NCBI GenBank assembly: GCA_000320545.1
Contig: ADNK01000583.1
Span: 31,459 to 95,458 of the forward strand
Reading direction: 5' to 3'
Source: Bigelowiella natans CCMP2755
Taxonomy: Eukaryota > Protista > Cercozoa
DNA: 64,000 bases
Part shown: one piece after another, positions 189 to 47,300 of the stretch
Layout: each line of letters opens with the position of its first letter
Numbering within the stretch: the stretch's first letter is position 1
Program-made: the position numbers and the translations under genes
Notes under the pieces: generated by a model
Seen by the model: only the letters and a program-made list of their open reading frames with translations
What the model was told of the DNA's origin: nothing
The model's database searches: none

Positions 189-1088
189 ATGACTCTGAAG
201 CACTTTTGCTTGCCAACATCGACATCGTCTGTCGCTCGGAAGGCGGAGAAAACGGAAAAAGTGAAATGTCCTCCTTTCGCCTCTCTCACCATCTCCGTTC
301 CAGGGGCTACACATTTTGACCGCGAGAACCTCTCGCTGGTTAGTTTTGAGAAGCTTGGGAACGCTCTGGGCAATAATAATCGGAAGCAGCAGCAGCAGCA
401 GCAGCAACGTGTCCTCTACGTAGGGTGCGGTACTGGCGTGTTAGGACTGTTGGCATTACGCTTCAAGCTCTGCAGCTATGTGCATTTCTCAGATGTCAAC
501 ACAGAGGCCCTAGAGTCTGCACGTCGAAATGCACAGAATAATGGATACGAGGAGGGAAAACACTTCCGTGCGTCGATTTTCGACCTCAACAACAACGATC
601 ATCCTTTGAACAACTATCCCCCTACGAGTTGCCGATTTGACGTAATTCTATGCAATCCGCCGCAAATGCCAGGTCCTAAAGACCTAGGCTACCGACGTCC
701 CGACAAGTATGCAGGGAAAGATGGGATGCTTTATTATCGAAGGTTGGCATATCTGGCTGGGAAGCTCTCGCCGACTCCCCGTGTTGTTTTCATGCAAACG
801 AGTTTCTCTTCCTTCTCTGAGGTTGATAGAATATTTCATGACATCGCCCGCCTTCACGTGCGCACAGTACATGTACAGGAGAGAAAAGTTTCCATTAAAG
901 CAGTTTCTGCCCTTTGTTCCGGTCAATTCAGATGGTTGCATGACCTTCAAAAGGTGGGAACAGCCTGCTTCAAGAAAAAGGAGGACAGTGTCATATATTC
1001 GCAAAGACTCGCTGCTGCATCATCACATAAAAAAGATGCGTACAATACTCATGCAAGGGCTACTGCTAGGATCTCATCGTCCCTTTGA
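189..1088 (+). CDS. Class I SAM-dependent methyltransferase, HemK/MTS-like, apparently intronless
   Basis: 299-aa ORF with motif I-like VLYVGCGTG, acidic post-I SDVN..ALESARRNAQNNG, FDVILCNPPQ (an NPPY-type motif IV variant) and AGKDG (cf. HemK GGxDG). Confidence 0.8.
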   Translation: MTLKHFCLPTSTSSVARKAEKTEKVKCPPFASLTISVPGATHFDRENLSLVSFEKLGNALGNNNRKQQQQQQQRVLYVGCGTGVLGLLALRFKLCSYVHFSDVNTEALESARRNAQNNGYEEGKHFRASIFDLNNNDHPLNNYPPTSCRFDVILCNPPQMPGPKDLGYRRPDKYAGKDGMLYYRRLAYLAGKLSPTPRVVFMQTSFSSFSEVDRIFHDIARLHVRTVHVQERKVSIKAVSALCSGQFRWLHDLQKVGTACFKKKEDSVIYSQRLAAASSHKKDAYNTHARATARISSSL

Positions 1089-1467: not shown

Positions 1468-2018
1468 CATAAGATAGTAGCTCATGTAGCAACATACATT
1501 GTGTCCACAACCTAGCACAGTGTATGTTGTGCGCCCCATCCATGTGTGAATTGTTGTGGGTTCTGATCGGTCAAAGATGCGAGCATAAAGTAGTTGGAAA
1601 TCGCTGCATCACTCAAAGTTCATGAGCGCACACATTGCAGACACTGCATGTTCCTGGCAATGATTTGGCAGCCAGCGGCCAGCGATTGTCCATCGTCACA
1701 CTAGTATCGCACATGTGCACAATGTATATAAGTGTAAGACGAATGTAATCAATCATATTAAATTTGTTCTATGGCCATCCTCATGTAGCTGTGCAATGCA
1801 GCGGAAATGATAAAGCATATGAAGCATCCGAATTCAGCGTGCATCGTTCCACATGCGTCTATGCTATATGCGTCACATGTTGTACGCAGAATCGAGCTAG
1901 TGTTGGATATTAATAATGATAAAAAACACGCACAGACGATGCTGCGCAAGACTGGAGTCGATTTGGACAATTATATATGCAATAAATACCAATGAATCTG
2001 ACATCAACAATAGCTCGT

Positions 2019-36096: not shown

Positions 36097-36872
36097 TAGG
36101 ACCAGAGGAGAAAGAGAGCGGAGAAAAAGAGAGGAGAGAAATGAAGAGAGTAAAAAATGCAATGCTGTTGTCATATTTGGTGAACAATTTCTTTCACAAA
36201 TATACCCCATATTAGTCTTTAATTCTTCAAATTCTGCAAGTGCTGTGAGTACAAGTGTAAGCGAACGTGGCATGTTTTCAACGAAAAACAACTTTACTGA
36301 GAATTTGGATTCCAGCTTCTTTCAGTGCCCAATTGTCCCTGAATTATATCAAAAAGATCGGAGGATTTCTAAATCTACATACGATCAGAAAATTGAACTT
36401 CATGCTGGTAATTTTACCATATCAAGCGCCCTCTATCTTCCTCCTAAATGTAAGGATCATTAGTGGTGTTCTGATTGTGATTTAGAGAAATTCTTACACT
36501 CCCGATATCTGCTGGTTTAGGTGGAGCATTGTTTAGTCGCTGTTATTGTGACGGATGTAAGTTAAAATTGCAACGTGCGTTGGATGTTGTGCTACTTCTA
36601 AGGCCTGATCTTTGTCCCGGACATCACTTTTAACTTCACTCATCTGCACAGATGCCAATGAAACTTCATGAGGTAGCTCTATTTCACCAAAGGGGGACAA
36701 CGATTCCACTACCTTACGGAAGCTTTGATGAGTTTTTTGATTCTGTGCGAGAGCCCCGAAGATATTTTTGGTTCTCGTGTTCTAGTCCAATAGGAGTTTT
36801 GCAAGAATTGATTGGTTTTTTATTGTCGCAGCACCAAAATCAAGATAAAATCGTACGAATAATTTGTTCATT
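25703..36872 (-). CDS. Very large, intron-dense hypothetical protein containing Sel1-like repeats; boundaries approximate
   Basis: Dozens of short exons bounded by minus-strand GT/AG. Phase-consistent splicing at 28480-29000 gives LAQRYFELGDKLG...MAGILQKAADNGHRHSAWRLASYYLCGRAG (Sel1 consensus KAA..G...A...LG..Y..G). Last exon reads ...EWLRYEFPRPNANAK*. Confidence 0.5.
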
Positions 36873-36939
36873 TCAGCAAGCGTCAACGCTCCTTGCCGCC
36901 CTTCGTTCCAACCCCTTCATTTTAGTGGCGATTTGATGT

Positions 36940-37930
36940 GCAGGTAGCACATGTAGATGACTGCCAAACACTTTTCTTTTCATTAAAATCAATTTTTCGC
37001 ACACCCAATTTGACCTGGAAATTGGTTTGGTTGCAAGCATGATTTCGATTCAACCTTTGAAAGTGCTTCACTCATTCATCCATTCAAGCTGATTGGGGAG
37101 GACGTGGATGAGTTGGAACGTCTCATGATCCTTTCAGATCAGGCTCTGAACCAGTGAAAGTGCTTCGTTCGTCCACTCCATCGTGGAGTCAACTCACGTG
37201 CACCTCCACACACTCACTCGTTCGTTCGCTTGCGCTCACCATTGTGTTCATGCACTCTCACGCGAAGCAGAGCAGCCGAAGCATGACAACTGCGCGCGTC
37301 ACGCATGGGAACTCGTGTCAAGTCTGCAAGTTGGAGGGCATCGATGCACGCACGGATCGCTTTGAAGGACGTCCAAACGTGCAAAACACGCACTGTGGAC
37401 ATCACGCTTGCATTGTTTGGTGTGTTGGGTCGACTCTGCGCATCTGTGCGCAACGGTCTGTTGTGCACCAATGCACAATGCACCACACACCCACGCACTG
37501 CATCCGTTGCGCCCATTGCCGACAGCCGTGTCGTTTGAACAAACAAGCATGCAGTTTCATGGCAACCACTCTGGCACTGGCAACGCAACAATGACGGTGA
37601 AACAGAACGCGTTCGCAGCTGCTCGCTGAGGTGTGCTGTTCATCGATTGCACGCACCACAAACATTGCGTGCATCGCAATGCAAAGTGCCTGCGCTGGCG
37701 CGTCTGCACTCAATCATTCACATCAATTGTGATCTGCAACGCATGACCAGTCTAGCAGTCTGAAAGTGGTGCCATGCTCACAATGTCCAGACATCGATGG
37801 CGCGGCTGCGATGACCAGGTGACGTACCAACAACTCTAGACCTTGACACGGTCATTGCGTTGCGCGCAACGCCATTCTAGAATTGCACGACACACTGGGA
37901 TTGAAAACATGTCATGGCTACATAGTTAGT
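36940..37930. repeat. TpA-free tract (decayed repeat)
   Basis: No TA dinucleotide between 36986 and 37752. Confidence 0.8.
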
Positions 37931-37957
37931 GTGAACAGGCCATGCAATCTTGACAAA

Positions 37958-39806
37958 TCAAATCTCAATATGGATGACATCGCCAGCTTTGGTTCCTTCC
38001 GGAGCTTCAACCTCAAACTGCTGCCCATTTATTTCTACTGCGAAGGACTGGCCTGCACCCACGCACTCAGGTATCTGGACATCGTACAGCTGGGGATTCT
38101 CCGTGAAAGAAGAAGGGGGTGGTGGAGCGGTTGGAGTGGGAGAAGGGGTAGTCTTGGTCTCCAAATCAAGGTTCTGCATTTGTTTCTCTATGTTCTGCGG
38201 TGGGACTGTAGAAATCGTAGGTTTCTGGTTTTCCACCACCTTGGGTTGAACGATCTCAACCGACTGAGGCGCAACAATTTGATATTGAGCGGAAGAATTC
38301 GGTGTGGGCTGCACGACTTGCGCCTGCACGGTTTGTATTTCAACTGGAGGAGGGGGCTGGAACTGGATTTCGGAACCGGGACCCATACCCTTGTTTTACA
38401 GCATCGATTTTGATCATGTGAAAGCAAACGTGTTACGAGTTTCTCATTCTCGCCCATTTTCCTTTTAGTCCTTCAAATTTTATAATTCCCCTCCCTATCC
38501 CATATGTCACATACATAAAACTGGCTGACCTTTGGAACCACGAGAGATACAATTTGTCCATTAGCCTGGACCTGGAAGCTATGCCCAGCCGTTACACCTT
38601 GCGGAACGACTGCCCTCATCAGCGTTGGCGATGGCTTCTTAGAAGGAGGCGGTGGAGCAGCGTAGGTGGGAGCAGAAGGGGTGCTACTTTTCCCCTTAAA
38701 ATCTAGAATTTTTGATAAATTTATGCTTTCAGTGACATGTGATTGCAACGTATCAATGGTATGCTATCATCTTTTGGCATGTAGTCCGCACTCATAACGC
38801 ACCCGTTTTCACATTGACGACGGTTTTTGTGTTAGCAGGAGATGCTGCTACGTTGGGCTTGCTTTTGGCTCGTGGTTGTGCTATTGCTGCCCCAAGAGCA
38901 ACGCCCGCCGCGACAGCACCACCTCGACGACGCACAAGTGGCCTCACAACCCGAGCTCTGGGCCTAATCACAACCTGAAGGAGCAAGAGAGTTACCACTG
39001 ATGACTCTTTATTGGAGTTCCCTTGTTAAAAGAGAATGCTCTACACGCGAACGATTAATCGGGAAAACTTTATGATTACGTTATTGACTCTCCAACTGTC
39101 ACAGACGGTGTAGTGATGATGATGATGATTATTATTATTATGTTGATTAAGGTGGGGGTGGTGCTGGTCGCGACGGAGGAAGTGACGATGCGGAAAGGAG
39201 GGAGAAAAGATGGTATGATGGCGCGTGAACACTCTGTTAGTGGTACCGGGCGGCCAACAGGGCGGTGGACAACTACTGCGCGGCGTCCCAGGGGACGCAC
39301 GGCTGGGCGCCCAAGGACAGCTCGTACTACAGCTCGTGCAACTCGGACCGTTGGGCGCACCACAGCAGGGCGTACTACAGCAGGACGTACCACTACACCA
39401 CTGCGCCGATGCGCAACTCGATTTGCTTGCATGTGCAGCCGAGCCGCCTAAGAAGATGAGAAATGAACGATTGAGGAAGGAAGAAGGATAGGGTTTATAC
39501 ACAAGATTATAACTTACCCTCTGCACGTTACCCCGCGCGAGGGCACGCCCTGCCTTTCTTTCCAGCCTGTTTGCCCTTCGCTGATTTGCATAGAAAAACG
39601 GGACAGGCACATGAGAATTCCGAATTGCAGATGCAGCGATATTTTGTCTTCGAATGAAGAACATGAATGTATACATGTACCCGTGACAACATGTGCCCAT
39701 ACAACCAACAGCAATCAACATGTTAAGGAGGGGGCTACGTGAAGGCTTGTGGTGTTAATATGGTGTTAGGTTAGATCTATGGTACTGCTCTTCCACGCCG
39801 CCTCAT
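37958..39806 (-). CDS. Hypothetical protein: Arg/Val-rich basic N-terminus plus two copies of a VxVPxG..PG small beta domain; about 6 exons
   Basis: MRRRGRA|RRANRLERKAGRALARGNVQR|AARLH...VVVRPAVVRPAVVRP...|VVIRPRARVVRP...|MRAVVPQGVTAGHSFQVQANGQIVSLVVPK|GMGPGSEIQFQ...YDVQIPECVGAGQSFAVEINGQQFEVEAPEGTKAGDVIHIEI*. Confidence 0.75.
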
Positions 39807-43259: not shown

Positions 43260-44300
43260 TGTGTACATGTCCACACACAGCAGACAGCCTACATGTGCAC
43301 ATGATCGACATCGCATCTGCTGCATGTCATGTGTGCGTCCATGCATGCATGCGCCAAGTTCACGTCGTGTTCCATGTGCATGATTGTTGGAAGAAGTGGT
43401 GGATGGTGGCGGTGGGCTGTTCAATGTCGCAAAATGCATTCATTGACGACGCTGGAGCATGTCGCAGTCGTTACATCCGTTGCCACATCTGCTACTGTGC
43501 TTGCTAGCTTGTCATCAGCATGTTGCACGTTAGCATGCTAGCATGCGGTGAAACCAAGCTGGGTAGCAAGCTACGCCAACACCAAGAAGAAACGCAGCAG
43601 CAACTCGAAAAAGCACGTCGATCGTTGTCATTGCACTTCAAAAGTGTGATGCATCAGTGGCTTCATCGCCCTTGTCGCACGTCTGCTGTGCTCTCACTCA
43701 CTAGCTCATGGCGCATTGCACGCTTCCACAACTCCGTCAAACCCTGTGACGACTGGGGTTTGCACAAAACATGCTTACGCGCGCGGCCTGGTGCGCTCAA
43801 TCGTTGCAACTGGACATTCGCAGCACACTGGAGCCTGTTTGAAGTTCAAGTTCAATTTTTTTCGAATTCATTCAGCTTCAAAACTTCACTTTTCAACGCC
43901 TGCGCCTGCGGAAATAGCTTGTCACTTCCGAAACAGCTAGCGCAGTTGCACTTGCTGTGCCAAAAGTTTTGCAACATCATGAGGGTGTGCGCACACCAGC
44001 TTCATGTCATTGTGAAATCAAAGCACAAAAACGCAAAAAAATTGCTCTCAATTGAGAGGTCATGCCACTCATCACAGGTTTGACGGAGTTGTGTCTGGAA
44101 AGCCACAGCTGCGCGCCTCTCTTGTCACATTGGTAGTAGTTGAAGAAGGATGTGCTTGTCAGCAACAGCAAATGAAAGTGCCATCAGCCAGGTGAACATG
44201 ATGCAATTGTTTTGTTGGAAAAAATCATGATGTTCACATGCATTTTCGCGCGGTGTGCTGCCATTGCTAGATTGGTGATGATGCCAAGTTTTGCCACTGC
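43260..44300. repeat. TpA-depleted tract
   Basis: Residual TA almost all in TAG/CTA contexts; ORFs are nearly Tyr-free and Cys/His-rich. Confidence 0.7.
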
Positions 44301-44303
44301 CTT

Positions 44304-47300
44304 TTAACCCCATTGTCCATGAGTGGACGCCAATTTCCATGCAGGATCTACTGCGATGTTCTGCCTGATGGCCTTATTGAAAATCTGATGGATCTGATTT
44401 TTAGAGAGATGGTTTGATCGGGTTATGATCGCATCAGGATCGGTTGCCAGAATGACAATGCCTATCTTTCGGACACGTGCTGGAGGTGTGGTCCAAGTCA
44501 ACGGAACCTTACCTCTAACCCCAGTCCAACCGACTGTGGCTGGCGATCCTGAGAATCTCTCAGAAGCTGTAGCTTTAGTGTATCTGTCGGCTCCGACCAG
44601 TTTCCAGGAGCCAAAATCATTGCAACCGATGTTTGGAAAATTGCCAGGGCTCGCCACCCTCTCCAATCGATTGAACGCATCTTCAGGCATTTTATACTCG
44701 CCGTCCAGTCCTGGGCCTAAACCCTTCAAAGTTGCTGACGTGGGGTAAGCAATTCCATGCGCAATCACGTTGTACTTTCCAGGCGGAAGTTCATTCTCGT
44801 GGGTAGCTACAATACATTGATTTTGCTGGCGTGACAACATGAATTCTGTGTTCCCACCGACGGTTTGGCCAGTTTGAGCATTGGTGATCAAAACATTCAG
44901 AAGTGCTTTTTTGGGATTGAGAGGATTTTTGGTAGTGGCTTGTGTCATCATAGCAACAACCTCGCAGCTCGACTTGAGCTCAATTGTTGCGGAGTTCCAA
45001 AAGGTGTACTTACTCGTCTGCATTTCCCATCTTTGCTGCGCCGCCCATGGTTTCCCATTTAGCGAGCTTGTCATGGCGAAACTTACAGTCTGGTACAGCT
45101 TTGTCCACATGCTGTATTCCATCCAAAACTCTCCATCATCACCACCAAATTTAGGCTGGAAGACTCGCTTTGCCTCAGCAGTCCAGCTAGGCGAACCTTC
45201 ACCCCATGCTAATCGATACTCAAAACTGCCATGCGGGTTTCGGAGATTAACTAGCTTCACGAGTCGGCCATTAACTGTTCCTTCTTTCGCGCCCAGAAAG
45301 CTGTATGCATGCCCAGGGTAGATTCCAATAGCTTGCTCCGCTCCATAGACAGAGTTGATAGCACCATTGTCTTTCCACTCATATTTGGACCCATACGTGC
45401 CCGAACACATGGGCAGTCCTAGTTTTGTTAGTCGAAGAAGCTGATTCCATAGGACTGATTTTCTGGGGCTTCTATCAGATCTTACGGGAACAATCGCAGC
45501 GGGATAGCCAGTTATATCTCTCAATGCATGATGTGCTATTCCACCTTTAAGATTCATATATCCTCCGCGAAGCTTTGCATAGGCCTTCTCGACTAATGTT
45601 GACCATAGCTCAGCTTGGCACTTAGAGGTTATGAAAACGGGACCTCCATATGGCCTGCATGGGATGTAATCGTCAATTACAACCGTGCGCCTGATACCAC
45701 GTTGTGTGATGTTGACCGCATACATGCCTGTTTTCGACTCTTCGCCATCGAAAAACATCCTGGGGACAAATCCCTTTTTCTCGGCCACAGTTGCTAACGC
45801 GGATACAAACCAACAGTCTCCTAAGCTGCCTTGGTTGACATCATCTGCCTCTTCTCCATTCACGAACACAGCAACTGGAAGTTCCCTCCGGAAACCGCCA
45901 TCTCGATCCGCATGGGGCCGACGCCACGCCACTTGTCTCCCGCCGAGGCTCTCTCTCTGGCGAGTGCCATTGATCACTCTTTCTCTACCCAAAGATCTTG
46001 AATCCGGTGGAAATTCGGCATCGTAAAAGAGTTTCTTGTCCTTCATAAGCTGTTCAACAGCTTTCTGATGCACCTCTTTAGTTACCTAAAGTTATGTCAC
46101 ATTGTATCATTCTACATACCCACACATACGCACGCAATCTACACGCTATGCTTGCATCACAAGTCGATGGTAACGGAATTCTCTGAATTACATGCGGGAT
46201 CTGGTTGCAGTGAAAAATGATTTCATCTAACAACCCTTGCACCATGCATGGAACGAGGATCAGATAGAAATCATTCAATTTTAGAGCTGAATTCAGAGCT
46301 CCGATCGGACTCCGGTGCATCGGGTCGTGAAGTGTGCGAAACATACATGACATGACCTGTCTCTTTTTCCCGTCTTCGATGAGATATGTGAGTGGATCGA
46401 GAGAAGGATCAGTAGGTTCATCCAATATTGTCCCTTCTGCAAACTTCCTTTCTAGCTCTTCGGCTTTCTTTCTGGCCTCCTCCGCTGCTTTCTTACGTGC
46501 AGCAAGCTTTTTTGCCCAGGCCCCTGGGTTCTTTCTTTTTTCTTCTTCGTCTAAAAGCCGCTGTCTTTCCGCCTCTGTAGAATGATATAAACAAATAAAA
46601 TGACGATGATAATGATGGTGGGTAGGTTTACAACAGCAAGGGCCGACAATAGTAAGACTGATGACGATATCATCATCACGCATATTCGGTGTGTCAGACG
46701 GAATCGAAAATTTAACAAACAAAATCAATTATTTTCAACTAATCCTTGCGGTGGCAAGCTTGCCGCGAGGATTATCTGAAAACAATCGAACTTTCTAGGT
46801 AACGATCATTATTCGCAGTTACAATTCGCACACACCATAACTTTAGATTTGCAATTTGTTTACGGAAGGAAAACAAGGGAACGATGATTAATATGATGGA
46901 TCGTGATGACGAGTGGTGATGATGAGCGGTGATGATGGATGGTGATGATAGGTGGTGATGATGGATGATGATCATTATATGTAGGCGACGGAGGTGATGA
47001 AGGTTTGAAAGATGATGGCGATAAAAGTGCAAAAATGAATGTTAAAAAAAATGATGTTTACCCTGCGCTATCCTCCTTGCTTCCTCTGCAGCTTTTCTTG
47101 CAGCCTCTGTGCGCTCTCTGTCAGCCTTTGCTTTTTCCTCAGCTGCTTTTTTGGCGAGCTCATCAGCCCTGGCTTTAGCTTCCGCAAGTAACTTGAGCAT
47201 GCGCTGCCTCTCTTCTTCTGCCTTTATCTTCGCCTCCTCGATTTCTTTCTGATATTTATCCACCAACGCCTTGATACCAGCCATCTCATCTGCTTTCATT

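Follow-up and report, generated by a model that had tools for sequence, protein, structure and literature searches.

Localised, dinucleotide-specific transitions that affect both strands and degrade mobile DNA are produced in fungi by RIP (RID/DIM-2). RIP requires duplicated sequences and a sexual cycle, and its chemistry is C to T at CpA, so that TpA is created. Conversion of adenine to inosine, which is read as an A to G change, is carried out by TadA/ADAT2 deaminases and by laboratory-evolved TadA editors; TadA-type enzymes prefer a 5′ T. Deamination-based hypermutation of selfish nucleic acids is also represented by ADAR hyper-editing, whose targets are retroelements and viruses, and by APOBEC3. 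ADAR takes RNA as a substrate, changes A to G on one strand and favours UAG, while APOBEC edits C.

A process much closer to the subject of this study has been measured in Bigelowiella natans itself. Using mutation accumulation, Mettrop et al. (bioRxiv 10.64898/2026.01.13.699255) found hypermutation of TpA to TpG/CpA in this species: in 15 lines 231 of 302 substitutions fell in two virus-derived regions, where the rate was ~1000-fold over background and almost all changes were TpA to TpG or CpA. The hypermutation arose in clonal lines, and its largest target was transcriptionally silent. The same authors registered 124 TpA-depleted clusters across the genome, defined as three 1-kb windows with TpA observed/expected ratio (o/e) ≤0.43 and CpA+TpG ≥1.52, found that TpA-poor genes are enriched for transposon domains and proposed the ADAT2-like protein Bn78255 as a candidate enzyme (bioRxiv 10.64898/2026.01.13.699255). 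A DNA-acting ADAT2 derivative, BjADAT2, is cited in this preprint, and its main text makes no mention of CTAG sparing, short repeats or directionality. Two other publications, on “transition hypermutation” in Rhizoctonia (PMC7884421) and on the ChlorV methylome, which is without a CTAG motif (10.1101/2025.11.19.688996), proved not relevant here.

The tract studied here lies in a 64,000-nt stretch of B. natans DNA (“the window”), to which all coordinates refer. The genome searched comprised 91,405,885 bases in 3736 contigs with 45% GC; the published assembly is of 91.4 Mb and 3,736 contigs (PMC12730881). For a gene of the window, the nearest named matches were proteins of chlorarachniophytes. 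The tract and its surroundings contain the following features:

36200–36670, minus strand: 5′ part of the left flanking gene, with four CT..AC introns and a gene start near 36670
36596–37003, plus strand: spliced transcript with a GT..AG intron at ~36673–36876, reaching at least 37003
36985–37753, no strand: strictly TpA-free core, a 769-nt TA gap
36985–37918, no strand: full TpA-erased domain, 4 TA left
36996–37085, plus strand: second family A unit, degenerate, at ~97-nt spacing, matching copies L019, L007 and L025
37098–37135, plus strand: family A core, a 7-bp stem with a 10-nt loop, then a (TTCA/TTCG)n-like tail
37150–37960, no strand: tract body, single-copy at BLAST sensitivity
37901–39357, minus strand: right flanking expressed gene of 4 exons, from RNA data

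The original prediction stated that TpA is absent from 36986 to 37752 in spite of several dozen expected, that TG and CA are abundant and that CpG is not depleted, and the counts bear this out. Successive TA dinucleotides stand at 36984–36985 and 37753–37754. With 185 T and 182 A between 36986 and 37752, composition predicts 43.9 TA, and 32.9 are expected at the window-wide TA o/e of 0.75 (Poisson P0 5e-15). The second-longest TA gap within the 64-kb window is 206 nt, and the maximum gap in 64-kb third-order Markov simulations (n = 30) was 185 nt against the 769 nt observed, so chance was rejected. The o/e values in the tract are 1.71 for TG, 1.84 for CA and 1.0 for CG. The erased domain, ~0.93 kb long, continues beyond the TA-free segment noticed originally and retains 4 TA versus 53.5 expected, three of them within CTAG (37753, 37837 and 37878) and one within GTAC (37825). 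Its TG and CA counts (93 vs 112, p = 0.21) make the footprint symmetric with respect to strands. Coding bias is ruled out as the cause, since TA o/e is 0.56–0.65 in the window's long ORFs, where no TA gap exceeds 164 nt. An assembly artefact was rejected because contigs of two DNA runs cross the tract with 0 differences, though both runs may be of the same strain. These runs show no new mutation in the tract either, where only 4 TA are left as targets. Three other stretches of the window are also TpA-depleted, namely 17251–17900 (12 TA vs 47 expected), 22251–23600 (18 vs 84) and 43551–44400 (12 vs 58), and CTAG accounts for 25–50% of the TA surviving in them.

RNA data place the tract between two genes. 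The left flank (36200–36984) has normal TpA content (o/e 0.63). On the other side the 3′ end of the right gene (~37901) coincides with the right edge of the erased domain, and TpA o/e of this gene is 0.61 in exons and 0.70 in introns. The spliced plus-strand transcript originates close to the 5′ end of the left gene, which it overlaps on the opposite strand, and enters the tract, its contig ending in adapter sequence; it is possibly non-coding and divergent. Fewer than 10 plus-strand reads cover ~36900–37612 (depth 0.3–0.9), and the tract seems to be weakly transcribed, unlike the silent largest target of Mettrop et al. Elsewhere the window carries ordinary host genes, among them a methyltransferase (189–1088, plus strand), a plastid-targeted ribosomal protein L4 with two in-frame introns (18572–19711, minus strand) and a calpain-family protease (44304–46073, minus strand).

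As to a foreign origin, the left end of the tract is a dispersed repeat, family A being represented in the first 200 nt by a clear unit and a degenerate one. In the ORFs of the body the Pfam search found no domain, and a search for TIR, LTR and TSD at the tract edges gave none that was convincing. Nor did a genome-wide search find an intact copy of 37150–37960, which is single-copy today. Transition-tolerant alignment against 51 loci gave a best score of 152, diffuse and close to the null maximum of 137.5, with nothing convincing. The tract shares with the system of Mettrop et al. the species, a probable conversion of TpA to TpG/CpA that hits either strand and a TpA-depleted, CpA+TpG-enriched footprint (TpA 0.0 and CpA+TpG 1.78, which lie within both of their cut-offs). 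It differs in being smaller than their three-window cluster, not recognisably viral and fully saturated.

The hairpin repeat at the left end, family A, occupies at least ~45 genomic sites. In the tract its stem is formed by 37100–37106 and 37117–37123. Across copies 96.8% of stem cells pair, 4 of 7 pairs vary on both sides, and the covariation score, inflated by relatedness of the copies, was equalled by 0 of 500 shuffles. Rfam and ARAGORN gave no structured-RNA or tRNA match for the motif, and inspection by eye revealed no conserved hammerhead core in the hairpin. Features of a non-LTR 3′ end are present in the form of the covarying stem-loop followed by a tail; none of 150 scored reverse transcriptase matches lay, by eye, just upstream of a same-strand motif site. 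Several direct units are often found per locus (L010–L031). Some family A copies seem to be transcribed, since three RNA reads lying on the plus strand of the motif in the window show a base that is a variant of other copies. Two family A loci share, in opposite orientation, a nested element that contains a palindromic array of short tandem units (motif offsets +128 to +304 in L013 and +327 to +443 in L028).

Depletion is oriented relative to this motif. Non-CTAG TpA was lower downstream than upstream in all 24 loci compared, with medians of 0.11 and 0.58, and the median domain edges were at −158 and +825. Strong downstream depletion characterised 21 of these 24 loci versus only 3 of 27 beyond the ends of another repeat, family B. 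The sequences downstream of family A do not align with each other, the exceptions being additional units of family A and a single nested insertion. Probably the motif represents the best preserved end of a ~1-kb element of some age, the body of which has decayed or carried variable cargo. Oriented insertion of family A at the edges of pre-existing domains appears unlikely. More doubtful still is that family A serves as a cis-acting nucleation signal (or transcript marker), from which hypermutation spreads one way for ~0.5–1.4 kb into single-copy host DNA up to the next gene. The weights given to these three readings are our own judgement. The oriented hairpin repeat, previously undescribed, is a modest new lead.

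Composition of TpA-poor DNA was compared with the outcome of simulated TpA to TpG/CpA conversion of flanking DNA, using 31 kb of tracts. The simulation gave TA 0.11, CA 1.60, CC 0.71, AT 0.96 and GC content of 0.495, while the observed values were 0.13, 1.62, 0.66, 0.94 and 0.495. The CC/GG deficit of the tracts was reproduced as well; CG came out too low (0.72 vs 0.85 observed). In aligned copies TA was the least conserved dinucleotide (0.465 vs 0.71–0.82 for the others), and its partners were TG and CA with 0.184 each, these symmetric counts being unpolarised by themselves.

Polarisation came from family B, a high-copy repeat resembling a SINE/LINE 3′ end, unrelated to family A and provided with a short tandem tail as well as an inverted repeat in its interior (window positions 1733–1804, 16767–16815 and 22022–22093; also L032–L061). 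A first look at the genome yielded 1478 candidates. With direction taken from the majority base in 28 copies with 10 TAH sites, A to G changes were registered in 37 of 251 cases at TAH (0.147) versus 0.047 at other A (p = 5e-9), and TA loss per copy was negatively correlated with the TA o/e measured just downstream of the copy (rho −0.60, p = 0.0009), both p-values being optimistic because the copies share kinship and the sites are few. Copies of this single family range from TA-intact to TA-erased depending on their neighbourhood, so that attack is directed at genomic domains rather than at sequence families. For the tract body, which has no unmutated copy or orthologue that we could find, we infer the direction TA to TG/CA, with family B as support from a second family. 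A retroelement of recent origin, whose open frame spans 1659 aa, is present in >100 copies with identical reverse transcriptase scores, which might mean that its abundance by itself has not yet triggered hypermutation.

These data agree with the original prediction in that TpA is converted locally to TpG/CpA on either strand, as composition, copy comparison and the measurements of Mettrop et al. all indicate; the polarised repeat alignment that it called for shows A to G about 3 times commoner at TpA than elsewhere. The process is real and was already known in B. natans, although the original prediction could name no described pathway: the system envisaged from the sequence is the one measured in the mutation-accumulation lines. 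Its characterisation as RIP-like action against repeats holds only in part, as the tract is mostly single-copy and loss follows neighbourhood rather than family.

The motif CTAG makes an exception to TpA loss, which is new relative to the main text of the preprint. In tracts CTAG is kept at its background rate (ratio 1.10), while the ratio is down to 0.20 for CTAA and CTAC and to 0.03–0.09 for the other NTAN tetranucleotides. Accordingly, CTAG makes up 41% of surviving TA in tracts vs 5% outside (p = 6e-62). The simplest rule, where a 3′ G blocks editing (“TAH”), found partial support at most. TAG sites of family B mutate at 0.112, not differing from TAH (p = 0.32), and an additive model misfits CTAT/ATAG, which drop to 0.063 (−ln 1.91 fitted vs 2.72 observed). 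TAG is also hit de novo. A hand count in the A-strand reading of the NCLDV list (Table S2 of bioRxiv 10.64898/2026.01.13.699255) gave 67 changes at TAT, 67 at TAA, 52 at TAC, 20 at TAG and 5 in other contexts, with 206 of 210 A:T to G:C changes at TpA; four such changes in Table S2 lie outside TpA. The TAG share of 20/206 (0.097) is about half of the 0.21 expected from non-tract DNA rather than from the region's own composition (p = 1e-5). On the reference strand the TAG hits split into 17 T to C changes at CTA and only 3 A to G at TAG, perhaps for compositional reasons. Since TAG is halved de novo, yet mutated in family B, a 3′ G slows the change without blocking it. Sparing of CTAG then means either that both neighbours count or that the palindrome itself is protected.

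Based on this data one can assume with considerable confidence that B. natans TpA hypermutation has left this tract as a saturated scar. The contrary view, that the element or spacer is inherently TpA-poor owing to selection or donor style and bears no mutation scar, draws on the failure to find a TA-rich sequence from which the body could have descended. It is nevertheless very improbable: the 24 tract bodies are mostly unrelated, yet 21 of them are strongly TpA-poor downstream of the motif, the pooled tracts spare CTAG, copies of one family pass from TA-intact to TA-erased with their surroundings, and the process has been measured de novo in this species (bioRxiv 10.64898/2026.01.13.699255). 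The tracts are thus not near-identical copies of one TA-poor element, and an excess of TA to TG/CA changes among copies is present. Enrichment of TG and CA might also recall ordinary 5mC decay at CpG or RIP of the fungal type, and CG to TG/CA changes are slightly elevated in family B (0.078 vs 0.055). Neither process removes TpA. CG o/e of 1.0 together with a TA o/e of zero is not what CpG decay leaves, and its simulation (TA 0.67, CG 0.22) did not reproduce the tract profile. Fungal RIP runs in the opposite direction, creating the dinucleotide that is missing here at the expense of CpA, which is enriched. Moreover, RIP needs duplication over several hundred bases, while the body is single-copy today, even if it may have been duplicated in the distant past, and hypermutation in B. 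natans was seen in clonal lines. The chance that either CpG decay or RIP is responsible is negligible.

What converts the A of TpA is a separate question. Error-prone local repair synthesis by a Y-family polymerase of the polymerase eta type (WA to WG) would leave a strand-symmetric footprint like the one observed, and this polymerase produces A to G changes at WA, chiefly at TA. Its WA signature is ruled out, since ApA is untouched: in family B A to G changes occur at 0.052 in AA, 0.045 in CA and 0.043 in GA, AA o/e in tracts reaches 1.16 as in the simulation where TA alone was converted, and 206 of 210 de novo A:T to G:C changes are at TpA. Participation of such a polymerase is accordingly highly improbable. 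RNA editing of the ADAR type, fixed by reverse transcription, was rejected because the tract is strand-symmetric, CTAG is spared and TAG is under-represented de novo; ADAR is one-stranded and favours a 3′ G, which is disfavoured here, and APOBEC edits C, while the footprint is at the A of TpA. More serious, though still the less probable option, is that TpA bears an adenine or thymine mark which is misrepaired or miscoded, CTAG being shielded by a competing mark or protein. Sparing of CTAG beyond a simple 3′-G rule, mutation of TAG in family B and the 20 TAG hits among 206 de novo events all speak in its favour. Against it stand the deficit of TAG among de novo changes, the preference of TadA-type enzymes for a 5′ T and the fact that the literature examined documents no modification of this kind.

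We therefore lean, with some reserve, towards deamination of A to inosine in DNA by a recruited TadA/ADAT2-like enzyme. According to this scheme a local non-genic domain of ~0.93 kb, at whose start an old repeat with a hairpin survives as a relic, would become a target when the enzyme is recruited to silenced or foreign chromatin. There the enzyme would deaminate the A of TpA, and replication would fix inosine as G, so that A of TpA would turn into G on either strand and leave TpG or CpA. Repeated rounds would saturate old domains until almost only CTAG is left. For TadA/ADAT2 the B. natans genome offers candidate loci only: six CDA-fold deaminase loci (PF00383/PF14437) were found along with one A_deamin locus, and they add little weight, since a genome needs such a number in any case for its tRNA and nucleotide metabolism. 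Both the enzyme and a function in genome defence are hypotheses, in the preprint as well.

Since the process was reported for B. natans in 2026, the tract is mainly one more example of it. As a saturated read-out it indicates that the process acts on sub-kilobase intergenic domains and halts at expressed genes. Immunity of CTAG constrains the enzyme and speaks against an ADAR-like one. The depletion is also oriented relative to a small hairpin repeat. With these features the questions of enzyme and target choice become somewhat easier to test. If family A does nucleate the depletion, the system would gain its first targeting element, which, combined with the CTAG exception, would open both target choice and enzyme specificity to direct tests. 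As a genome mutator directed at adenine and specific for TpA, the process is a striking parallel to fungal RIP.
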